A DNA stretch of 62,155 nucleotides, counting the filler, from Bipalium vagum (taxonomy: Eukaryota), in the NCBI GenBank assembly GCA_037834085.1. It is 3 parts of 3 records of this genome, joined end to end, with 100 filler letters (N's around TTAATTAATTAA, not from the genome) between each part and the next. Parts side by side here need not be neighbours in the genome. Positions count along the whole stretch, not along the records: positions 1 to 16,125 come from JBBMKC010125841.1; 2 more parts are not named here. One strand, 5' to 3'. Below are positions 1 through 16,050 of the stretch, in pieces (positions within the stretch are counted from its first letter, which is position 1; the number at the start of each line of letters is the position of its first letter). The translations under genes and the position numbers were made by a program. The notes under the pieces are model-generated. The model searched no databases, had not been told where the DNA came from, and saw only the letters and a list, made by a program, of their open reading frames with translations.

Positions 1-1217
1 TTTTAAATAATAGTAAAAAGTAAATATTCCAGACAATTATTTATTTTGAATATTATACATAAACAATAATTCACAGATTTTTTAAAAGTAGATTTTGAAA
101 ATTATGTCCTTCAAATGACCACCACTTTCTGCCTCTCAAAATTTGGATCTTTTTATTGAGTTTTCCATGACATCTGCTAAAACCTCCGGGTCTATTGCTT
201 TAATTTTGTCACGAATATTATTCTTTAATTGTTGAATGGACTTTGGCTTATTAATATAATATTTCCCCCAAAAAAAATAATCTGGTGCTGATAAATCTCA
301 ACGAGGAGGACAGTTGAATGTCGAATTTCTGGAAATTATCCGATTACAGAAAATCTCACGTAAGAGTTATATGGTATGTTTCGCCGTGTGTGCGGTGGCT
401 CCATCTTGTTGAAACCACATCAGTTCATTGTCCGCAACAGCAGGAAGCAAATATGTTTTAATCATATCGGGATATCGCTTAGCATTTATGGTTACAGCAT
501 TCCCATTAACATCCTTAAAGAAATATGGCCCTATAATCTTTTCATATGAAACACCACACCAAACTGTGCATTTCATCGAATGCATTTCTCTTTAGTGAAC
601 ATCCCTTGCATTTTCAGATCAACATATTCTATAATTTTGCTTGTTGACAAATCCATTCAGATGAAAGTGGGATTCGTCACTCATTATCAAATTCTGCATG
701 AAGTTTTCATGAGCCATTTCTTGAAATTTCCGGACATAGGTTAATCTTTGTTGTTGGTCTGCCTGCTTCAAATATTGCACCATTTGAATTTTGTATGGAA
801 ACAGTTTTTGTTCCCTTACCAGAATTCGTTGTAAGGTTTTTCGAGAAATTCCTAATTGCAAAGAACGTCTTCAAGCTGATGTTTCTGGGTCCTCCACAAT
901 ACTCTTTCGACTCGTTCAATATCTTTATTTCTGGTTTGGTGCGGTCTTCCCAATCTATGCAAATCGTTTACGGAGCCCTGGCCTTGGAAACGTTTAATTA
1001 ATTACATAATCATAAATGGTGCTCGTGGCTTCTTAACATTGAAATGTTTGCAATATTTACGTTGAGTTCAGATTATTGAATTATTTTTTTGAAAATTGTA
1101 TTGTATATCTTTGTGACATTAATTTCCTGGAATCCATTTTTATATGTACAATTTCAAAATAAATATTGATTTTTTTATGAATTTTTAAATTTATTAATTA
1201 ACTTTTGCGCCACCATG
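1..1217 (-). mobile_element. Decayed Tc1/mariner element, rosa (DD41D)-type transposase pseudogene; 3' end probably outside the window
   Basis: Frameshifted fragments SDESHFHLNGFVNKQNYRI (619-861), WFQQDGATAHTA (367-585), PPR*DLSAPDYF and a GGHLKDIIF C-terminus. Second-to-third Asp spacing is 40, with an apparent one-codon loss. TIR-like end TA|CATGGTGGCGCAAAAGTT at about 1200-1219. Confidence 0.85.
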
Positions 1218-1821: not shown

Positions 1822-4800
1822 TCAACCTCTGTAATTACCCAACATCATATTGACATCATTCGCAGTCTTATTGTATTCGTCAATATTTGATTGGATAAAT
1901 TCAGTGAAGCTCTGGATAAATATTCGAATATTTGGATAGGTTGTTGATTCAATGTTTATCAGAACATCAAACAAATTTAACCAAATATTTCCAGCTCGCA
2001 AATTTCTAAAAAAGAGAAAATCGATGAACAAAAAAACTACGTTGGTGAAAATATTCCATTTTTAACGAAGCCAATAATATTGATACTTACTAAGTTTTTT
2101 GATAAGTGCGGTTTGTGATTTTATGGTGGGTTGGTGGAAGCAATTGCGTCATATATAATCATAGAATAATAATAATAATTGAAAAACATTATAATTAGCT
2201 ATGTTAGTAATATGAAAATTTTTATTATTCTCATTTTCATTATGCTGGAATTTTGTTTGGGCTTTAGCGATGCATTATTGATGAGATGACTGATATCATT
2301 CTCAGTCAAATGCATTCTAGCTGAACCCATAATGAAACCTCCTGGTACTCCATTAGTTATAGAAAAGGGGAGATGATGATAAAATAATGAAGAGAATAAA
2401 GACGATGAATGAAAGAGAATTAATTACTTTTTATGAGATTCGAGAAATCGCGATAAGAAGCTGTGAAGAGTAAAATTGAGATTTGTATCTTGGCATAATT
2501 TGTGAGTTGCTTTGAGGAAAAGGTGTTTTAAAGAGATTTAATTTGTGGTAATGTGTTAATTAGAGATTTTTAAAAATGTCTTTAGTGGAAAATGAATTGG
2601 TTTGAGATCGTGAAAAAATGTTAACCTTTGGTGACCAATGTGACCAGTATAAAGCCTTATGTAATTTTTAGTGATTAGTCAAATCTGGCTCAAAGATAAA
2701 AAAGTTGAGGTTAGTGAAATTAGGAGTGCGTACGAGAAAATCGTAAAAAACAGAATTGATTAGTAGAAAAGAAAATAATGTATCTAAGAAGTCTATTAGA
2801 GTACGTCAGTTGAAGATAATTGCTCAAAAGTGAATAAATTGTAGAGTAAGAGTTAGTAAAATTGTCGGTGAATGTGTGGGATTTTATGTCGGAATATCGA
2901 AGTGGCTGAAGGTTTGGTTTCGATGATGAACGAATTATGCAAAGATTGCCTATACATTTTTGTGGTATGGAAAGGAATATATCAGCAGATTGAATCGACA
3001 GATTTTTCATTAAAAAAATCAGAGACCAGATGAGGCGGCTAGAAAATGTGTATGAGTTAGTATTATTGGTACAAAGGGTTTGGTTTCAAGAAGCAGTGGA
3101 ATAAGATTGATTAGAAAAATTTGAGGAATGTTTTATTGAAATTGCGCAACCACTGAGGACGACTATAGGATTGGCAGATTATAAAGATGTAGATGAATTT
3201 TTTCATAAAGTAGAGCCGAAATGAGTATTACGGATAATCCACGAATCATTTTACGAATTCGAAATTAGAAAACGAGATATGTATTAACATAAACTTTGTA
3301 ATCAGATCGTCAATTTCATTGGTTTTGGAGGTTACGAACACAACATTTTCCCAATCCAGTAACGTACTTTGTTTCATTAATAATTCTCTTTGTATACCAT
3401 ATCTTTACATTTCGATCCAAATTTGAGAAATTACTGATCTATATTTGAACTCAAAGACAAAATGATTGAATATTTTGCCTCTTCCAATGTTTCATGAGAT
3501 TATTTGAAAAGTTTTTAGTTAACAATTAAAACAGCACACTTTGTTGTACAAAATTATAAATTGGTCTTAATATTAAGAAAATGAAAAATAATAATAATCT
3601 CCAGTTTTTGTCTGATATATCAGTTCAATTAGTCTAAAAGAAAGTTGAAAGATTTATAATAAATAAGATCATGATACTGTATTTTAAAAATGTAAACATG
3701 GAAAAAATGAAAAATTATACCTGAAGTTTGTAAAACTAGAAAATGTGAAACGACCATTTTTCTGAACAATTTTTGGATATTGGTTTTGTAAAAGAACATA
3801 AAGAGTTGTAGCAATGTTAAACAAATCGATCTGAAAAAGATTTATTGTCGATAAAATCAAATTAATAAAAGCAAACTTTTTCACAATCGATTTTAAGAAT
3901 TTTACATTTAAGAATTACTTCAAATATTTAAGTATTTAAAAAATATTTAGTATTTAAAAGTCAATTTTTGGAAAAATATTAAAATTATTTATATCTGATA
4001 CAAACAAGACAATATTTTTTATAGGAAAGATTTCCACAAATCATAGCGGGAAAATGGGATGTTTGGCAATATTTAAATTATAAATAGTCAATGCATGAGA
4101 TGGTTTCAACGATTTAAACATGGACATATAGGTCTGAAAGACGATCAGCATGAACAACCCAGTGCACAAAATCCTCCCAGTTCCACCATACACATATCAT
4201 TGTTTTCTTGGGATGAAGTTCTTTCTTTACTCTTGGCTTAGGCTTGACTCCATTAGCTACCAACTCCTTCCTCTTTCTCATATTGACGTAGAGACACCAT
4301 TTCTCATCTCCTTTAACGATTCTATGCAGAAATCGCTCCGTGTGGCCGCATGTCGCTGCAGGATGTTTCACTGTTGACAAAGTTCAAAACAGTAGAAATG
4401 ATAGATACATCAGATATGCCTGTGAGCGATGTCCCAGATCACATTAAAAGCATTACCAGGTCAAAAAATCCCAGCCATATGATGGTTTTTGGACTGGTGT
4501 CATCAGATGGTAAAAAATGCCTACAGAATTGTTTGACAAAGGTTTTAAATTAAATACTGACGGTTATCTGAAGATTTTACAAGAAAAAGTTCTCCCATGG
4601 GTTCGAGCCAACTATGCCGACATGGGAAAAGTCATTTTTACCCAAGATTTATTACCGTTGATCTCCGATTTATCTATTGTCAGAAATATGTTTTGGCTTC
4701 GAAGATAAATAATGATCTCTGAACAAGTAATTTCTTACTAGTGTTTCAGATGGCAATTTTAAATTCATAAAATCTAAAGATTCAATCATTTCCTTATTTC

Positions 4801-7800
4801 GGGCTTTCTGCAGAGAAAACATAGGGGTTTGTTATTAAATGAACAAAATCGTGTTTAGGTTTTGTTAACCACGGCAATTTAATTTTTGATGTCTGAAATC
4901 ATAGAAAATAAACACGCTTTCAAAATGTATTTATAAACAACTTATCTGCCCATAAAAGTATTATTTAAACAAATAATTTTTAATTGATTTTTTAATTTTA
5001 TTAAAAATACTCAGAGGTTTAATTAAAAATGACTGTTCCAATTTGTTTATACTTAAACCTTTAAGCATTTGGATATGTATCAAAAGATTCATGTTAAAAT
5101 ATAAAATCCTGGGAATTCTATCGTAAGAGTTATTCTGTTTGTCTTCCGTAGAAATTGCAGTTTTTTACTTCATCTAAGACATTAAAGATTATTTTTAGGT
5201 GTAACTCATATCTACAGAAGTAAGACAAAACAAGGAAAAGGATTTGTATTATTTCTTTTAATCTAGGCTTGGTCATAAAGTTATTTATTTATAATATGCA
5301 AAGAATAATCAGAAACAAGGTTACTAAAACCAATTAGTAAACTAGGCGTTAATTATCAATAAACAAAAATAAAAACTGTTATTGTAAAAAAGCCAAACAG
5401 AACAATAAATACATTTTTAGGTCAGATGAAGATAATTATAGAAAATCGAGACAGAGACAGATCGTTTTCATCTGCATCAAGAATATTCTCCACAAGAATA
5501 TTTTTAAAAAATTGAATTATCAAATTTAATGTGAATAACTTACCAACGACACGTTGATATGAAAGAAGTTTTTCGAAATTTTAACATTAAAAACATAATT
5601 ACATGTGATGATTTATAATCTTTTATCATTTTTTTTCCTAAATTATTAATGTGTTTAAAAATTAATTCGGTTTTTAAAGTTAAAACGAAATTAAGTTTTT
5701 TATGCATAAGTACATTTTTAATGAGCAAAAAAATAAGATAATTTTAGGCCTCTTGTCCTTATTTTCGAGGAACCGGGTCAATATGTACCTAGGTTTGAAT
5801 CGAATATTCTACCAACTAATGAATGCTTGAGAAAGCGAAATGAGTAAAAATCTTAAGAAACTAAGTCAAGCAAATATGGTTTATAAGGTGTTACATACCA
5901 ACCACCATACAGGAGGTCCTGCTTATTCATACTCATTCATTCTTTTTACGTTCATGGTAGCCTCCTCGGCTTTATACATTCATTTAATTTTTCCAGTCTC
6001 TGACAGTAAAGTTCAGAATTATTTTTTACTTCTTCCGTAGTAGTTCAAAAAACTTACACCGTCATCTCCTCCATTAGAAACCAGAACTTTCTTTATGTAT
6101 TCCAGATTTGGATATAGTTTGAGATAGTTCACCTCTCTTGACCGCTTTCAACTATGATTACTACATATAGATAATCAGCTGATTATCCGCTGTTATGGTT
6201 CTTTTCAGAAACAGGTAGATATCCCCTTCTGTGAGACTCAGCAGAATGCAAATATCAAGATTTGCGAAATAACTAAGCCGTTTGAAAAAGGTGTGGACAG
6301 TTGAATTAGGCAAATTAAATGTTTTCAATTCTCAAGTTATCAAAAGTAGGTTTTCTTAAACTAAAATCTTCAGCTTATTTGTAATTTGATGTAGCTTCTA
6401 AAACGTTAAAGATTTTGAAAATAAAAATAAACTTGCCATTGATTTTCTTACACGACACGTAACTTTATTCTGGTTTGTTTAACAGAAGTCAAACCATTTG
6501 TGTCGATTTTTTAATGATTAAAAAATTAATAGTTTAGATTTTCATTGCTTTATACAGGATTCTGATAAGCACATTAAAAAATTGCATTTCTAATATTTTT
6601 CAACTTTTTAATTTATAATTCTGTTGCCATTTGATCTTGAAAGAGAACATGAATTTAATTTTGACAAGTATTTTATCAATCGAATATAGAAAATATTGAA
6701 ATATGTAAAAAATTCAATATCAAAAATAATTTTAATTACACACCAATTTAATATTAATATTCAACAATATTTTTTCACATATCTTCATCGAATAACAAAG
6801 ATATTCAAAACAATAAGTTCACGTTTTTTTCCATAATTGATTTGTATCAATGTGTGAAAAATTTGATATGAAAATCTCATAATTAATAAAATCGATAAAA
6901 CTTTAAATTAATCAGTATTTATGAGTCAAATTTTAGAATATCAATTAGATATTTTGAAATAATTGAAATAAGAGGAAAAACTTGTGCAATCATCTGTAAA
7001 TAATCAATATACCTGATAACGCCAAGGTTTGTTTGAAACCATTTCAACACATTCAAGGCCTTTTGGGCTGCCACGAGTGACAAAACCCGAATGAGGTTTG
7101 AATCTCTCAAGAAAAATTGCTTTTCCAAAATCAATAAAGACAATGACTTGAGTTTTACTGGAAAAAAAGACCTCAATTGTGGAATGAAAGGAATATTAAT
7201 GTAGTGATGCTTACGTTAATTTGAAAGATTTCTGCAAATGAGGAAAATTTTCATTTAGAACGATATTATCGGGTTTTATATCACAGTGCAATATTCGTGC
7301 AAAACTATGCAAATAGAAAATGGTCCAAATCAGTTCAATAGCAACATATGCAGAGATCAATTCTATTTGATGAACCCGAAAATGTTCCTTTCTAATCAAT
7401 ACACTCAAATTCAGTAGTGTCCCCTTTCCATAAAACGGCATGAGAACAAATGTATGTGTTGGCGTTACTTGAAGACTGAGTATTTCACAAATGGACGACA
7501 ACTGGAAAATAAGATTATTCGATGATTAGAAAAGAACATTAATCTTTGTACTGTATTGATTTTTTGTGGTTTTTCTTTATAGATATCACGAATATATTTC
7601 ATAACGAAATATTCAATGCAACTAGAGGAATTAATGATCTTGACAACATATTCATTGATTTTTGAAAACTGCTTCCTCGCCAAGTATATCTCCACAGTAT
7701 GGTCACATTTCAATTTGAACTTCGAACTGATAAAAAACTCTTCCATTACATTTCCAATTTCTTAATAGAATTTAGATTTTAAATAAATTGATTTAAATCC

Positions 7801-10800
7801 CAAAAACCAATTTTTGTCACATAACCCTTTAATATTAAAATTAAAAAATTTGATGTACCCTTGATTTTATAACAAATTTTTGAAGTTGGTCTCATTTGAG
7901 TGATTATAAAAAGTAATGTCTAACATGAATCAATTTAAAGTTTTGAGAATGTCGTGTTATGGATTTAAATAAGACAATTTTGAAAATGTTTCACAAATAA
8001 ATATTTGCAAAGAAAAGAAAATCGATCTTTTATAACCACATCACTCCTGGATTGTGGTCTGCAAAGTCTCCTGATTGTAATCAACTTGACTATTACGTTT
8101 TGGACGTGGTTGAAGCGATAATAAATAAGACTGTCTGTAATAAAAATGACCTATTCTCGTTTCAGGAGTCGTGTAGAGACTGTCATTGATTCTGATGGTT
8201 GGTTTATTGAATAATTAAAACCTCCAATGTTTAATATTACTGAAATTTCGAATAAATCTCCAAAATTATAGTTTGAGGTATTTTTCTTTTTTGTATTTTA
8301 CTGTACTCTACCGTAATCAATGAGGATCATCTCAATCATTGATTTTTAAGAATTCATGAAAGTACCGATGGAACACGTCTTTTAAAAAAATATTTACAGA
8401 TCAAATTGTCCAATCCCCTTTCAATTATCAAAATCTTACTGAATTTTAGTTTTTGATAAGTTCGAATACTTTCTGTCACTACCAAAACGTTCTGATCGTT
8501 CATTAATTGTGGCAAAATCTCTTCCCACCAAACGGCTCGTAAACTTTCACTCCATGGACTATCTTCGACAATTGGAATATTACCTGGTACTAAAATTTCA
8601 TTTTGAGTAATATCAAACTTTGTTTTGTCGAGATCATTTTCTGATTGTGCACTTACAGAAAGAAAATGCCTTCTAAAAAAATATAGTGGAATACAAAAAC
8701 TCCAAACGTTACACATAATTATAGTTGATATTTATCCTGAGCCACAATCATCAAAGCTTCGATAATCTTATCATTGGTGTCTTTTGAGTTTTAACAGATT
8801 TTTATTTTGACAGTTAGTTAGTCAAATATTCTATGAAAGCCAATATATCATTTTATAAAATTTTCAAAACTGACAGAAAGTATAACAATTTTTTTAACAG
8901 ACCACGAAAAAAGAAAATTATGTTGACGAGAAAATCGAACTGTATATAATACAATAAAAAATCTCTTCAATTTCATTCTATTTGATACAAGCACAAAACG
9001 TGCAATATTCAGACAAAAAAAAGAAAAGATTTTCAGACTTCTATAGAAGAAAAACATTTTATTATCAGAAGATAGTTTGTATAACGAAGGGATATCTCAC
9101 GAGAAATTTCAAACTTATAACCAGACTTTATGAAAATCAGAAAAGAAATCGAAGTTTCAATTTTCTAAAACCATGAATCATACACAAAAAATTATAAAAT
9201 CGTCAACTTAAAATCAATAATCAGTAAATAGAAAATTTGAAATGAAATACTAAAATTAAGACAGAAAATAAAGTCAAATAATCCTATCGATTGAAAACTT
9301 TTATCGTTTAAAATATTTTTGAAAAATTAAGACACACTCTGAAATAGATGTATTATATGAAATGCACATTTACTTTAAACTCTCCAATTCGTTGCCGATC
9401 AATATTCTGCTGGCATCCTTTTCACTGTCCAACTGAAAATCGGAAGAATTAACGCAGTTTTCTTTACCTGAGCCAACAATGATTTGCGAAATCAATACTA
9501 TTTCATTACCTGAAACCGGTTTCAGAGATACATCCACCATTTCCGTGACAGAAAGAATGTTTTGCAATTTTTCATTCAATTTCAACACATTTCTATCATT
9601 ATCGGTTGGGCTTCGAATATTATGGTCTTTGGAATTCAATTGGAAATCGATAACAGGTTTCACTTTATTCTTAAGCTGTGGTGACTTTAACAGCTTTGGA
9701 ATTTGAGTTCGCTTCATTACATTGATATCGACTTTCTTTTCATTCTTTTCTTCTCTCTCATAACCGTCGTACACATTTTCCGCGATTTTAACAAAATCAT
9801 CGACTTTAGCATTGCTTCCCATAGGTAACTTCTTTGTACTTTCTGCTACTGGTAAATTCTTAAAAAACTCTTCTATGGGATGTATTGAAACTTTCTTGTC
9901 TTGATCGGGAATTTTAGTGCTTTTAGCAATTGGTTTTGTGACAACGAAATCTCTCTTCATAAGTGTATTGTCACAGCAATCGACCTTCTGTTCATCACGC
10001 TTTTTAGGACTTTCGACAATTTTAGGTTTGATTACAACATAATCATCATCTAACAGAACACGATTTTCAAATGGACGTTGTTTTCCATTTTGTGCTATCA
10101 TGTTTTGACTGGATACTTTTTTTGTGCTTTCAGCAATTGGTTTATTTCTTAAAAATTCATCGGGTTCAGCAATCATTTTTTCCGAATCGATTTTTTTCAG
10201 ATTTTTTGTGCTTTCTGCCATTGGCTGATTTTCTAAAAAATCTGCTTCAGTAATCGTTTTATCACTGTCCAATCTGCTCAATCTAGGTGCTATTAAGTCA
10301 ACAAATGGCAGTTTTTTGGTGCTCTCTGCAATTGGGGGATTCTTTAAAAAGTCGACAGGTTCTTCAATTGGTTTTCCAGGCTTATTGATTTCTCTCTGAT
10401 ATTGTGTACTTTCAGCCATCGGTTGATTTTTAAAAAAATCAACAGGTTCTGCCACATTTCCGGAAGATTTTTCAAACAATTTATCATTGATATTTTTCAA
10501 ATATTTAGGGGTCTCTGATATTGGCCTATTTTTCAAAACATCTTTCTCTGTAACAGTTTTGTCAATGTCAACTTCGTTCCATTTTGCTAGCATCGCTTTA
10601 CCGGTCTTTAATTTTTTTGTGCTTTCCGCAATTGGAAAATTTTTTAAAAATTCATCTGGCTCAGCAATCATTTTTTCAGAATTATCGAGTTTTTTCAGAT
10701 TTTTTGTACTTTCTGCTATTGGCATATCTTTCAAGAATTCCGCCTCGGTGATCGTTTTGTCTATTTCCAATCCATTCATTTTCACAACCATTTTATCATT

Positions 10801-13632
10801 ATCAACAATTATCGGAGATTTTGTCTTTTCTGTATTTGCTGCTATTGGTTTGTTTTTCATGTTATTGTCAAAATCTCCCTTTGTTTTCCTTTCAGTCACT
10901 TTTTCTGTCAACTTTTCTTTGCTTTCTGCAATTAATGGGTTTTTGAAATCTTTAATTCCTTTAGTTCTTTCATCGTTCCGATTTGTTGTTATTGGTTTAT
11001 TTACATACAAGATTTTAGTGCTTTCTGCAATAGGTTTGTTACAAGCAAAATCATTTTGCAGAATAGTTTTTTCTAAAAAGTTTTCTTTAGATTCCAATCG
11101 TCGATCACTTTCTGCACCAATCGACGATTTTGTTGATTCATCTGAACCTTCGTTGCCGTTGGAAGGTTCCGAAACTTCTATAATGTTAGATAAATTAGAC
11201 ATTTTAGAATCACATGTTGCCGCAAAAGATCGACTTCTACGCAATGATTTTATGGATTGAGATAAGGAACAATCCATTGCATTTGTTGCCGATTCAGATT
11301 TTTCTTTATCAATTTCATTGGAACTTTGCTTACCATCGGAAGATTGGTCATTAAAACTTGAAGATATTTCTGATGAGTGTTTGCGTGAATTCTCGTTGAG
11401 ACTTTTATCTAATTCTGACTTTATTATATTGGCTGAGTTGTTTTCCTCTTGATGACTACTGTCCAAGCTCGGCGTGGATCTTGATATCGATTTTTTCGCT
11501 TTCATTGGCAAGTTATCCGGCTTTTTGAAAATTCCGTCATTCTTGGAATTCTGCTTGCTCAAATTCATTTGTGCCAGATGGATTTCTCGAGCTTTGTCTT
11601 TGATGGCTTGGTTTATTTCGGGTAACATTTTTGGATCGATATATTTTGGGAAAATCTGATTGAGAGTTACGAGCAAAGATCGTTTGAATTCATTAAAATA
11701 ATCTGTCAACTTTTTCAACGTAAAATGAGTTAGTGGCAAAATAAAGAAAAAAGACTAACCCATTTATCTTCCAAAATTAAACTGAAAAATAAAAAAGCGA
11801 TTAAAATAATAAATTGGTTATGAATAATATAAAAAAATCTATCGGTAAAAATCTATAAAAATTCTTTTAAAAATCAGCTTCTATTCTTGTATTGTCTTAG
11901 ATAATCGTTTTAATAAAATCCATCGATATTTCAGTTTTATTATATAATTTTTATTTTCAACATTAATATTAATATAATATTAAAAAATGCATATAAAAAA
12001 AACGATAATCCGAAATTTCATTTGATTATTTTACTTTTTAATATTGATTTTTAGTACTTTTATGAATATATAACACTATATCTATCCCCTAGTTATAAAA
12101 ATTTCCAAAAATAAAATGTGAGATACACTATAGTATAGCCCGAAATCCTTAATAAGATGAATGAGAACTGGTTTAATACATAAACTTAGTCTATTAAATG
12201 TTTAATTATAATCAATCTTGGTCTTTCATAAACTAATAATTACAAGGAATTATGAAGGAATTTTAAAAAAGTCGATATTCTGACAATTATGATTTAAACA
12301 AAATCGTTAATAAAAAAGCTTATTATTTTAAATAAAAAAATATACATTGTTACTATTTTAAGTACACATACCAATTAAATTTTGAAATGTGGTAAATAGA
12401 AATTGGATAAATCCTGGTTTTTAAGTGCCTAAACTGCTTTTTTTATTTTAAAGTAGTTTGTTTTTGTTGAGAAAATAAAAACCATTAAGGGACTTTCATT
12501 AAAAATTAGTAAAAAGGTAACACTGGAACTTCTCAAGATGATCGGCATTAGATAATTAATTTTGATTGAGAAAATAATATAATTAAGTCAAAATGAAACA
12601 ATTTTATAATTACCAATTCTAAAGATGATTCAAAGTTAAAAAACAAAAAAATTAATTTTCTATTTTATCAAAAATTTTAGAGAAATGTGGGGGAAATGAA
12701 CAAGACATTTCGATCAACTTATGTTGACCAGCTTTCCTTTGATCATTTTTTACATATAAAAAATCAGATATATGTTTGAAGTAAAAATAAAGTTTAAAAA
12801 TAAAAATTGGAAGAAGACAACGTTTGGAAGTGACATTGTTTGAACCTCGTCATATTAATGTAAATAATAAATAAAAATCATGGACTTACGACAGTTCCGT
12901 TTCAAAATACCCCAGTGGTAATTTCGCTTCAGGTTTCTGAAGATCACCCTGGAACATTAATTGGATATTGAACTTAAAATTAACTTACAACTCTTTTGTT
13001 AACATCATTTAGCAAAACACCGAATGCATCCTAATAAAAAGATGTTTCAATAAATAAGATTGTTTAAGTTAAACCCTTATTGATTTCATTTTATTTCTAT
13101 AAATTGTTCGGCAGGACACCGAGGAAGCCTAAAATTAAATCAATATTGGAATGCCTTAGAAAAATCTTACGTCAATGGCTTTTTTCGTGGACAGAAATTG
13201 ATCTGCAATCAAAAGCTGAAATTAAAGATAATCATCTAAAGTTCCCGTGACCAATACTAACTTTAAAATTCTTAATATTGCTTTCGTACTGAAGATGAAA
13301 ATTAAACTTATATAAAATATAAAAATCTCACATTTTCAATAATTTTAGTATATCTCATATTTTCAATAACCAAATCCTAAATCAAAGATTAAGCAATAAA
13401 AAATGAAAATTTATTTAACAGTTTTTCTTTCTTCTGGAGTCAGGAGTTTTATATATGCTTTACAATAATTCCTAAATTCTGAGTGTGTTTCTTATTTTTA
13501 ATTAAATATTTTAAAGATCAGTTTAAATAAAATACTTAATTCACAATAATGTAACCTAAACCATTTTAGAAATTCGTCATTTTTTGATAAACAATCTTTT
13601 AAGGCATTGTCAATTTCATTGTTGGAAGACAT
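1822..13632 (-). CDS. bub1: Bub1/BubR1-family mitotic checkpoint Ser/Thr kinase, 16 coding exons, ~1331 aa
   Basis: Exons (minus): 13536-13632, 13420-13490, 13332-13376, 13171-13215, 13075-13128, 12989-13030, 12890-12948, 12372-12428, 11760-11781, 9374-11709, 8440-8672, 7552-7760, 7215-7501, 7013-7157, 3721-3830, 1822-2005. All are GT-AG with matching phases, 3996 nt in total. Bub1-type motifs: SPWSESL (N-terminal kinase extension), YVVK, [54 protein letters not shown]. The small 5' exons are less certain than the kinase exons. Confidence 0.88.
2040..3250 (-). mobile_element. Highly decayed reverse transcriptase relic, probably Penelope-like, in the last Bub1 intron
   Basis: The minus strand is C-rich and G-poor. 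Frameshifted fragments resemble Penelope RT in the expected order: SKPNLQPLR, ITNGVPGGFIMGS...SLKPK, ENENNKNFHITNI, NCFHQPTIKSQ. Many stops and no intact YxDD. Confidence 0.4.
4114..4350 (-). mobile_element. mariner (DD34D) transposase fragment
   Basis: FLHRIVKGDEKWCLYVN...KKELHPKKTMICVWWNWE. Confidence 0.85.
4390..4650 (+). mobile_element. maT (DD37D-type) transposase fragment
   Basis: RSKNPSHMMVFGLVSSDGKK, frameshift, MPTELFDKGFKLNTDGYLKILQEKVLPWV...IFTQD. Confidence 0.75.
5900..6320 (-). mobile_element. mariner transposase relic
   Basis: Fragments STVHTFFKRL, FLKRTITAD, KRGELSQTISKSGIH, FFELL, NSELYCQRLEKLNE. Confidence 0.7.
8030..8215 (+). mobile_element. maT/mariner-like transposase C-terminal fragment
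   Basis: HITPGLWSAKSPDCNQLDYYV and SRFRSRVETVIDSDG-type terminus. Confidence 0.65.
9835..11090 (-). repeat. Coding repeat array in Bub1 exon 10: about 14 units with core P[IMV]AEST(K), several preceded by (D/E)KT[IV]
   Basis: 8 exact P[IMV]AEST matches plus about 6 degenerate ones (PITTN, PLIAESK, PIAANT, PISETP, PKIVESP, PIAKST) in ORF 9370-11739. Confidence 0.9.
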
Positions 13633-14256: not shown

Positions 14257-15000
14257 AGGGTGCGTAAAAAGTCTGTTCACCTCATATAAAAATACAAATT
14301 TTAATTGAAAAGAATATTTTCAACAACGAAGTTTATTAAATACAGAAGTCTTAATATTTAATATGATATTCATTTGATTTTTTGATCAATTCTAATCTTT
14401 TGGGAATCGAGAAAAGAATTTTCTGGCATAAATTACGAGAAAGGTTGTATCATTTGATTTGGACTTCATTCCATAAATCTTCAGCAGAATTATGTTTCAT
14501 TGCTCTTAGTTGCCGTTTTAGGATACCACAGGTATTTTCTATGTTATTCAGATCAGGAGAATTACCTAGTCAAGGTAAGACATCAATATTTTTATTTTTT
14601 AGGAAAGCCTGGGTACTGTTGGCCTTATTAAGTAGAACCAAAACATGTTAAACAACGAATGCTGCTTTTGGAAATACTAAGTATTTTCTAACTGTCTATA
14701 TCATGAAGTATCTTTTTTGATATCCATCGGCATTCATATTTCCATTGATGTATGGATGGATCATGTCCAATAGCTGATTGGTTAAAGGCAGGGTTGCACT
14801 TTTCTCATGCGGCTCTTCGAATTTTCTTGAATTTTTTTCTCATTTTTATTAACATAATTTTTTCTAAATCTATTTCTAGCCACTTTCCTCTTTTAGCGAT
14901 TTCATCTTTCCAATTTTGTAAATCAATTATTATTTTATTATATTTTTATAAATAGGTCTAAAATTTTTATTATAATTTACAGCAAAAGCAAGAATTAATT
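14257..15000 (-). mobile_element. Tc1-type (DD34E) transposon relic
   Basis: SPDLNNIENTCGILKRQL...SIPKRLELIKKSNEYHIKY* on the minus strand. TIR-like TA|CAGGGTGCGTAAAAAGT at about 14255. Confidence 0.75.
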
Positions 15001-15559
15001 CATTAGGTTTATAAGTTGAAAAGATGCTTATTTAGTAAATGGTTCAAAGTCAAAATCAAACCGAAATTATTTATCTTAAATGAACGAATTTTAAATTAAA
15101 GATAATATTTAATTAATACTCATTTTAATGAATATCATCATCAATTTCTTTGGATAAGGTCTTGGGACAAATTTCCGCATTCTTTTCAGTCTTTTAGATC
15201 AGTCTTTTTTTTATAAAAAATTATGGAAAATTTTTTAAAATTTCAAATTCGGCTCAAGTACAACTTTCGGGAGGCAGAAACAAAGCTCATGAGGACAAAT
15301 CGAATTCTACTTTTTTCAAAATTTTAATATTTTTAGAATAATAATTAATATTCGTACTTTTAGTATTATTTTAAAAACATACCTTTGTTTTTCCAAATTT
15401 ATTTGTCTTATATTTCTAGATACTCTTATTATAAACTTATATACTCTTATTATAATCGACTTTATTCCTTGTTCCTGTTCTCTGCTTTATCAAGTCATTG
15501 TCTCTCACAGCAAATATTCTAGCCGTTGTGACTTGTGGCACACTTAGTTCGGTTGATGT

Positions 15560-16050
15560 ACTTCTTCCTCTCTCTAGTTTCTCTGAAAGGGTCACAAATA
15601 TCAATGTAAATCTTCTCAAACATCTCTGACATAGTGGATTTAACAGTTTTCTCTTTCACCATTTTAGTCACAGCCTTCGTTCTTTGACATTGTTTGCAGA
15701 AACTGACAATTGCCTTTACGGCCTCTTTTAGCCCCAAAATTTTGTATAATTTCTTCATGTATTGATATGTTTTCTCTGCACCTACATGGGCCAGTCAATG
15801 ATGAGTGTCGAAACATAGTTCCCATATATCCTTTCCTGTTTGTTGCTCAACTATTGACTTTGGAGATCTAGTTGCCTTGTCATGTCTCCACTGCGAATCT
15901 ATTTCCGTATTCCGTTTAAGACTCTAATGTTGGTCTTCTCTTTTTTGCATCCTCTTGTTCCAATAAGCATTGAGAACAAGTTTCACAAATAACTCTGGTC
16001 AGTACGTCTGCGTTCCAATGATTTATTCCTTTCTTATACTTTATATCCAT
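15560..16050 (-). mobile_element. Ty3/Gypsy LTR-retrotransposon pol fragment (RNase H end, integrase HHCC zinc domain, start of catalytic core)
   Basis: YKKGINHWNADVLTR, HH*LAHVGAEKTYQYMKK...CKQCQRTK, FEKIYIDICDPF. Confidence 0.85.

Follow-up and report, generated by a model that had tools for sequence, protein, structure and literature searches.

Human Bub1 binds Plk1 through one Cdk-primed S-T-P site (T609) and Cdc20 through Phe and KEN boxes, and the Plk1 that it scaffolds drives Cdc20 phosphorylation and inhibition of the APC/C (anaphase-promoting complex/cyclosome) in parallel to the Mad2-containing complex (PMC4773433). In C. elegans, which has no Mps1, PLK-1 bound to BUB-1 phosphorylates motifs in KNL-1 (PMC10996584). 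In flatworms, MadBub features have reportedly been lost or have diverged greatly, planarians are reported to be without MAD1 and MAD2 and yet to delay mitosis in nocodazole, and a 2025 review lists Schmidtea mediterranea as lacking Bub1, BubR1/Mad3 and Mad2 (PMC11794522). Here we analyze a Bub1-like gene of the flatworm Bipalium vagum on contig JBBMKC010125841.1 (C125841; 16,125 bases, analyzed whole), which opens a window of 62,155 nucleotides, the whole stretch of DNA presented, and belongs to an assembly of 440 Mb in 272,664 contigs. BUB1 kinases are annotated in other flatworms. In the gene described here, the middle region carries a selected, unique, multi-copy short linear motif (SLiM). 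The array was first noticed in a sequence-only reading of the locus, an observation confirmed and strengthened by our analysis.

The repeat array of the large exon

The middle region of the gene is encoded by one large exon, stop-free from 11754 down to 9373 on the minus strand (794 codons) in an AT-rich contig (GC 21-35%). Its 5′ acceptor probably lies near 11705-11712, preceded by a branch-like CTAAC. In the exon's protein, Lys, Ser, Glu and Asn are abundant, and aromatic residues and Cys are scarce. An AlphaFold2 model of exon residues 215-675, built from the single sequence, has a mean predicted local distance difference test score of 41.8 and is coil, with short helices only, placed on the T-E-A-[DE]-F-L part of several units. 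Composition and this weak model evidence agree, and both fit an exon encoding an intrinsically disordered region. The exon and its repeats are laid out as follows.

9374..11754, minus strand: large middle exon of the Bub1-like gene, from its open frame and splice signals read from sequence
9739..11088, minus strand: repeat array, exon residues 223-672, with 10 clean and 3-4 decayed units anchored on Pro
11014-11034, 10702-10722, 10615-10635, 10504-10524 and 10402-10422, minus strand: clean cores 1-5 of 10
10315-10335, 10204-10224, 10120-10140, 9913-9933 and 9832-9852, minus strand: clean cores 6-10 of 10
near 10900-10944, 10828-10848, 9997-10041 and 9751-9795, minus strand: decayed units
11008..11052, minus strand: unit 1, D-F-A-C-N-K-P-I-A-E-S-T-K, with E-K-T-I (11062-11073) and K-E-N (11080-11088) ahead
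10900..10944, minus strand: unit 2, decayed, D-F-K-N-P-L-I-A-E-S-K-E, shifted by one residue
10822..10866, minus strand: unit 3, decayed, core P-I-A-A-N-T-E
10696..10740, minus strand: unit 4, E-F-L-K-D-M-P-I-A-E-S-T-K, with D-K-T-I (10750-10761) ahead; first half of the duplicated block
10609..10653, minus strand: unit 5, E-F-L-K-N-F-P-I-A-E-S-T-K; latter half of the duplicated block
10498..10542, minus strand: unit 6, D-V-L-K-N-R-P-I-S-E-T-P-K, with D-K-T-V (10552-10563) ahead; core now proline-directed T-P
10396..10440, minus strand: unit 7, D-F-F-K-N-Q-P-M-A-E-S-T-Q
10309..10353, minus strand: unit 8, D-F-L-K-N-P-P-I-A-E-S-T-K
10198..10242, minus strand: unit 9, D-F-L-E-N-Q-P-M-A-E-S-T-K, with D-K-T-I (10252-10263) ahead; in the second copy of the block
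10114..10158, minus strand: unit 10, E-F-L-R-N-K-P-I-A-E-S-T-K
9997..10041, minus strand: unit 11, decayed, Y-V-V-I-K-P-K-I-V-E-S-P-K-K, core now S-P-K-K
9907..9951, minus strand: unit 12, D-F-V-V-T-K-P-I-A-K-S-T-K
9826..9870, minus strand: unit 13, E-F-F-K-N-L-P-V-A-E-S-T-K
9751..9795, minus strand: unit 14, remnant, D-D-F-V-K-I-A-E-N

The unit consensus is [TI]-x4-[DE]-F-[LF]-K-N-x-P-[IMV]-A-E-S-T-K-x-L, with one fully variable position before the invariant Pro, and in the central part of the array the cores are spaced 27-37 residues apart. Clean cores read P-[IMV]-A-E-S-T-[KQ] or are one-off variants (P-I-S-E-T-P-K, P-I-A-K-S-T-K); S-T is present in nine of the ten, its two columns reading SSSTSSSSSS and TTTPTTTTTT. 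Two unit forms alternate, 'A' (D-K-T-I-T-E-A-[ED]-F-L...) and 'B' (E-K-M-I-A-E-P-D-E-F-L...), and a block of one A and one B unit is duplicated, at residues 329-392 and 495-557. The element (D/E)-K-T-[IV] precedes four units, at exon residues 228, 332, 398 and 498; elsewhere the homologous D-K-T position holds Met, Asn, Pro or Ser, with Thr in only four of about 14 units. The array of about 14 units and the four upstream (D/E)KT[IV] elements had both been claimed from sequence, and both are found on the minus strand where they had been placed.

The repetition is far beyond what composition predicts, A-E-S-T being seen 8 times against 0.015 expected. Exact P-I-A-E-S-T-K occurs in five copies written with different codons, and Tandem Repeats Finder reports no DNA array at the locus. 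Across every pairing of the ten clean units, Nei-Gojobori counts gave a ratio of nonsynonymous to synonymous differences per site (pN/pS) of 0.15 for the seven core codons (P-I-A-E-S-T-K), 0.43 for D-F-L-K-N-x, and 0.71 and 0.93 for the flanking spacers, so that the core is indeed more constrained than its spacers within the array, an internal form of the comparison among orthologues on which the sequence-only reading had staked its proposal. Because the unit pairs are not independent and pS, at 0.64-0.80 throughout, is near saturation, the contrast between core and spacer weighs more than the absolute ratios. Such a low core ratio at near-saturated synonymous divergence indicates that the units are old and the core is under protein-level selection. 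The array is therefore old, has partly grown by duplication of the two-unit block, and has had its core kept by purifying selection. A recent tandem duplication of DNA, or a repeat carried by a transposon, is ruled out by the null result of Tandem Repeats Finder, the differing codons, the pS values and the uniqueness of the unit in the genome.

This uniqueness was seen at several levels. A profile of the unit (alignment A1) matched its 12 source units at this locus (E 5e-12 to 5e-7), with no match elsewhere in the genome scoring below E 1.9, and a degenerate DNA pattern for P-I-A-E-S-T-K found the five copies here and one unrelated site genome-wide. With the whole exon as query, none of 8000 scored candidates passed in a word-indexed search of 5.8 billion proteins, and an exhaustive HMMER search of 1.84 billion cluster representatives gave no match; close relatives of the organism are apparently missing from both libraries, which weakens the uniqueness reading. 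An exact-product look-up of the exon protein returned no record. We read the array as lineage-restricted, as had been proposed earlier, in what appears to be a fast-evolving disordered region, with nothing similar in the two libraries or elsewhere in the genome.

Several short features of the exon were also considered. K-E-N occurs twice against 0.8 expected, which is not significant, and a single S-T-P, of the canonical Cdk-primed Polo-docking type, lies upstream of the array; the counts of both being within chance, they were dropped as stand-alone evidence.

11470..11478, minus strand: the single S-T-P, 0.7 expected
9457..9465, minus strand: second K-E-N, past the array, in the exon only with the 9374 donor

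On the plus strand, an open reading frame of 257 codons (10487-11260) runs antisense to the array; it was rejected as a gene, being the antisense shadow of a sense frame rich in Lys, Glu and Asn.

The kinase exons and the gene model

The exons downstream of the array were searched one at a time.

8440..8672, minus strand: kinase-extension exon K0, with D-S-P-W; acceptor TTTTTTTAG/A in phase with the 9374 donor, read from sequence
7503..7760, minus strand: exon K1, kinase N-lobe, holding the lysine of V-V-K and, in C-I-E-Y-F, the alpha-C Glu, read from sequence
7502-7468, minus strand: intron K1-K2, GT-AG, 35 nucleotides
7215..7467, minus strand: kinase exon K2, with the catalytic loop H-C-D-I-K-P-D-N; matches Pkinase and BUB1 chains
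7214-7158, minus strand: intron K2-K3, 57 nucleotides
7013..7157, minus strand: kinase exon K3, containing D-F-G and also E-C-V-E-M-V-S-N-K-P-W-R-Y-Q, the activation segment specific to Bub1
6994..7012, minus strand: frame change directly after W-R-Y-Q, a 19-nucleotide GT..AG stretch or a shift of one nucleotide

Assignment to the Bub1 family is carried by two pieces. The piece at 7214-7525, which holds H-C-D-I-K-P-D-N, matches Pfam Pkinase (E 1.1e-6) and, among other PDB entries, BUB1; the piece at 7007-7195 finds human BUB1 chains and no others in the PDB (E 1.5e-6; 4QPM residues 213-257), and this activation-segment exon is single copy in the assembly. The catalytic residues are present (V-V-K, the Glu of C-I-E-Y-F, H-C-D-I-K-P-D-N and I-D-F-G), and the glycine-rich loop of K1 is without any glycine. 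Judged by its sequence, the gene is a divergent Bub1-family checkpoint kinase, the identity given to it in the sequence-only reading. Neither K0 nor K1 has a match of its own in Pfam or in a PDB sequence search. PDB searches with the shifted-frame piece and with the N-terminus of the large exon returned nothing useful, Pfam found only an insignificant LEM match on the large exon, and the open pieces upstream and downstream had no Pfam match.

The preferred donor of the large exon is AA/GTAAAT, with 9374 as the last exon base. A second acceptor, at 8641, is in phase with two alternative donors, at 9510 and 9468, and the array is retained in all three options. Four successive canonical GT-AG junctions in compatible phases, as read from sequence, connect the large exon to the kinase exons. 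Of the claim that the array is spliced to the kinase, the possibility of in-frame joining therefore stands; the only run with the locus is genomic. Short GT-AG introns inside the kinase domain (35 and 57 nucleotides) occur beside introns of about 680-700 nucleotides, a mix that we take to be typical of flatworms.

Directly after W-R-Y-Q the frame changes, and our model of the kinase C-lobe stops at 7013. Shifted by one base, the frame gives I-D-Y-L-Q-M-I-A-Q-V-F, similar by eye to subdomain IX of kinases; neither reading of 6994-7012 is backed by database matches. The contig that the run itself yields (X1) has the same sequence as the genome at this point, with no indel. A micro-intron, a genuine frameshift and an assembly error could each account for the frame change.

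The only match in the assembly to Mad3_BUB1_I, the tetratricopeptide repeat (TPR) domain, lies at C166309:8431-8529 (E 0.0028 in a single-protein scan, E 0.31 genome-wide), on a contig that does not overlap that of the gene; this exon may be the missing N-terminus of the Bub1-like gene or part of a separate Mad3-like gene. Contig C166309 is 15.5 kb long and otherwise full of transposon fragments, and its Mad3_BUB1_I match is one exon long. The GLEBS motif (Mad3_BUB1_II) is absent from the large exon, and genome-wide it gave one insignificant, stop-filled match (E 0.44).

A KNL1-Bub1 gene pair or fusion was also rejected. It would have to fit into the 700 bases between the large exon and K0, a gap too small for a KNL1 C-terminus, and the stretch S-I-K-S-L-R-R-S-R-S-F fails both the SILK and the RVxF pattern.

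Around the gene, mariner/DDE-type transposase fragments lie on both sides, and a retroelement domain marks the contig end. GC skew is +0.34 to +0.41 across 2001-3500, unlike the rest of the contig.

4117-4383 and 14453-14569, minus strand: transposase fragments flanking the gene (Transposase_1 E 1.9e-9, DDE_3 E 4.5e-4)
370-870, minus strand: pieces that are mariner-like by eye, with no Pfam match
15522-15794, minus strand: Integrase_H2C2, a retroelement integrase zinc-binding domain (E 6.6e-9), at the contig end, upstream of the gene

Candidate readers of the array

The array may be a multivalent phospho-docking platform in Bub1 with a Polo kinase as its leading candidate reader, a reading to which we give a probability of roughly 0.4. 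In the Polo-box consensus from the literature, [P/F]-[hydrophobic/P]-[hydrophobic]-[T/Q/H/M]-S-[pT/pS]-[P/hydrophobic], S-pT is the main determinant (PMC2920843). Our core P-[IMV]-A-E-S-T-K agrees with it at five of seven positions, -5, -4, -3, -1 and 0, having an invariant Pro at -5, Ile, Met or Val at -4 and Ala at -3; to that extent the context fits the earlier proposal that S-T is a Polo-box docking core. By established kinase preferences, the Lys at +1, in place of Pro, would exclude Cdk priming, and the Glu at -2 would make the Thr a credible substrate for mitotic kinases of the acidophilic type, Polo or Mps1 for instance. Potential readers are at hand, with Polo boxes at at least six loci in the genome, at least five of them above the Pfam cut-off (C53017, C264430, C258354, C65432 and C145809). 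The three loci that were read through (C53017, C264430 and C258354) retain the W-V-D-Y-S Trp and the D-H-[TI]-K His/Lys, the phospho-binding residues of human Plk1. The Polo-like kinase family of this genome is sizeable.

Selection has kept the 15-residue block [DE]-F-[LF]-K-N-x-P-[IMV]-A-E-S-T-K-x-L constant and has let the spacers drift. Under the Polo reading, the array Thr would be phosphorylated in mitosis by an acidophilic kinase, either a Polo-like kinase itself or Mps1, and each P-[IMV]-A-E-S-pT could then dock one Polo-box domain. A single Bub1 would in this way concentrate several Polo kinases beside its own kinase domain and its Cdc20-binding elements, and the array would multiply the single S-T-P site by which human and nematode Bub1 bind Plk1. 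We infer the phosphorylation, the reader protein and the checkpoint role alike.

A number of points weigh against this interpretation. At the level of the motif, Glu at -2 and Lys at +1 fall outside the published Polo-box preferences. The conserved block, at 15 residues with an invariant Phe 10 residues before the Thr, exceeds what a Polo box needs, and this suggests a larger interface with another reader. Two units have cores that became [ST]-P, which would not bind a Polo box, and both the phosphorylation of the Thr and Polo-box binding are predictions. At the level of the gene, the kinase C-lobe has the frame change described above and the gene could be damaged. The exon junctions are read from genomic sequence alone, the sole public run with the locus being DNA, as its contigs are collinear with the genome across introns. 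By Pfam scan this contig holds neither a TPR nor a GLEBS exon, and the library searches gave no orthologue to compare. At the level of the genome, the absences of Mad1, Mad2 and KNL1 come from an assembly fragmented into 272,664 contigs and are suggestive only. The failure to detect Mad1 and Mad2 in itself counts in favor of the Polo reading: a search for Mad2 found only one HORMA locus, at C63060:10750-11511, which is HORMAD1-like (PDB 8J69, E 1.6e-6), and Mad1 had no family match in the assembly. This agrees with the planarian reports, to which the sequence-only reading had also pointed. Neither the KNL1 RWD domain nor GLEBS had a significant match. These absences, like the tiny introns and the transposon load, have a flatworm-like character.

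Other readers and other fates for the array were weighed with known short motifs, whose patterns were drawn in part from the literature and each tested against 500 shuffles. The array may instead dock another partner, in a phosphorylated state or not, such as the WD40 domain of Cdc20 (by a degenerate ABBA-type motif), PP2A-B56 (by a KARD-like x-P-I-x-E-S-T), an FHA domain (by pT-x-x-L) or a lineage-specific protein, and we regard this as a doubtful but serious alternative. The long conserved block, with its invariant Phe and Pro and a Leu at +3 after the Thr, suggests an extended interface, and most units also fit T-x-x-[ILV]. The spacing of N-x-P-[IMV]-A-E, six residues, is that of ABBA, in which Pro at position 3 and a polar position 1 are known variants, and ABBA arrays already exist in the MadBub proteins of moss, basidiomycetes and stramenopiles; the pattern itself ([ILVMF]-x-[ILMVP]-[FHY]-x-[DE]), however, matches nothing in the exon, as F, H and Y are all missing from position 4. 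Similarly, P-I-x-E followed by Ser/Thr presumably recalls the KARD motif of BubR1, but the B56 patterns ([LMFYWIC]-x-x-I-x-E or L-x-x-[IVLWC]-x-E) have four matches in the exon and none at unit cores, since position 1 is a conserved Asn. RVxF and SILK fit no unit, and nothing points to any specific alternative reader. Two hydroxyl residues and the Glu at -2 are among the most conserved columns, which favors a phospho-switch. Alternatively, KNL1-like function could have moved into Bub1, with diverged T-aromatic and MELT-type modules that would bind Bub3 or the MadBub TPR when phosphorylated and let Bub1 recruit further Bub3-bound checkpoint proteins. The layout invites this idea: D-K-T-[IV] and an aromatic residue stand upstream of an acidic-x-Thr core followed by a basic residue, the units are about 30 residues long and grew by block duplication, and D-K-T-[IV] is a perfect Polo-kinase site, as in the nematode TF motif. 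The consensus of KNL1 repeats is also known to drift widely (MSLT or MEET, for example), and the genome search found no KNL1 RWD domain and no MELT array elsewhere, although Pfam searches of a fragmented assembly could not show the absence of a protein as divergent as KNL1. On strict tests, the resemblance to KNL1 noted in the sequence-only reading proved loose, and we consider such a transfer unlikely. No unit fits the MELT core [MILV]-[ED]-[MILVF]-[ST], whose hydrophobic positions are Ala and Ser in the units (two matches in the exon, both outside units, against a shuffle mean of 1.1). TxxF/Y fits no unit either, its two matches in the exon lying away from the D-K-T position, and the exon has no match to the TF motif of nematodes, [DN]-[DE]-T-h-x-h-F; the Thr-to-Phe spacing in the units is +6 instead of +3 or +4. 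The Pfam MELT model (PF19221) matched nothing on the exon at E up to 1 and nothing genome-wide, in a search of unknown sensitivity whose control matched nothing anywhere, and the Thr of D-K-T is confined to the minority of units given above.

A wider proposal, which we hold to be quite improbable, would join these elements: in a flatworm-like lineage without Mad1 and Mad2, Bub1 with its own KNL1-style phospho-array (Polo-primed D-K-T and A-E-S-T) would serve as the checkpoint scaffold, recruiting many Polo and/or Bub3-bound partners and delaying anaphase through direct phosphorylation of Cdc20, not through a Mad2 complex. It is very improbable, in our estimate, that the array is a functionless relic, either of a decaying or truncated Bub1 gene or as an exon not spliced to the kinase. 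The frame change after W-R-Y-Q, found with the same sequence in the independent contig set of the sole run with the locus, speaks for such a relic, as do the glycine-rich loop without glycines, a contig with no TPR or GLEBS exon, the transposon fragments around the gene and the review's statement that S. mediterranea is without Bub1. Against these stand an open frame of 794 codons in DNA of 30% GC, which is very unlikely without selection, the core pN/pS of 0.15, four canonical junctions in phase, and the catalytic residues, all present (Lys, Glu, HxD, DFG); the frame change may reflect an unrecognized splice event or an assembly fault, and a MadBub TPR exon is found on another contig.

Comparison with known systems

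The motif of BubR1 KARD, a PP2A-B56 LxxIxE ligand, may be like the array in its x-P-I-x-E followed by Ser/Thr. It differs in position 1, a conserved Asn here where the motif takes Leu, Met or Phe, and no unit fits the pattern. The ABBA arrays in the MadBub proteins of moss, basidiomycetes and stramenopiles also repeat a SLiM in a protein of the Bub1/Mad3 family. They share with the units a six-residue spacing with an acidic end and Pro at position 3, whereas their defining aromatic position 4 is Ile, Met or Val here.

In architecture, the arrays of KNL1/Spc105 (T-aromatic, MELT, SHT) are alike in having tandem units of about 30 residues in a disordered checkpoint protein, with a conserved short core and drifting spacers, growth by block duplication, and an acidic-x-Thr core after an upstream Thr/aromatic element. 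Here, however, the array sits in the kinase that is normally the reader of such arrays and not in a kinetochore scaffold; no unit fits the strict patterns (MELT, TxxF, TF), and the Pfam MELT model fails as well.

The S-T-P that docks Plk1 in human Bub1 (T609) and in C. elegans BUB-1 is likewise an S-T core lying in the disordered region between the N-terminal part and the kinase. In the B. vagum array, positions -5 to -3 (Pro, hydrophobic, Ala) agree with the extended Polo-box consensus, and the large exon also holds one true S-T-P. The array differs in its Lys at +1, which leaves no Cdk1 priming, in its Glu at -2, in its 10-14 copies instead of one, and in a conserved block that reaches 10 residues further upstream. 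The selected, multi-copy motif sits where Bub1 normally carries its Plk1- and Cdc20-binding elements. If this genome is that of a planarian, the presence of a Bub1-type kinase would contradict the Bub1 part of the review's statement (PMC11794522). For the nocodazole arrest reported in planarians, which are said to lack Mad1 and Mad2, the array offers a concrete candidate mechanism that can be mutated and synthesized. Among known systems, the array extends the rapid evolution of repeats, familiar from KNL1 and from the ABBA arrays of MadBub, to a new motif in Bub1.

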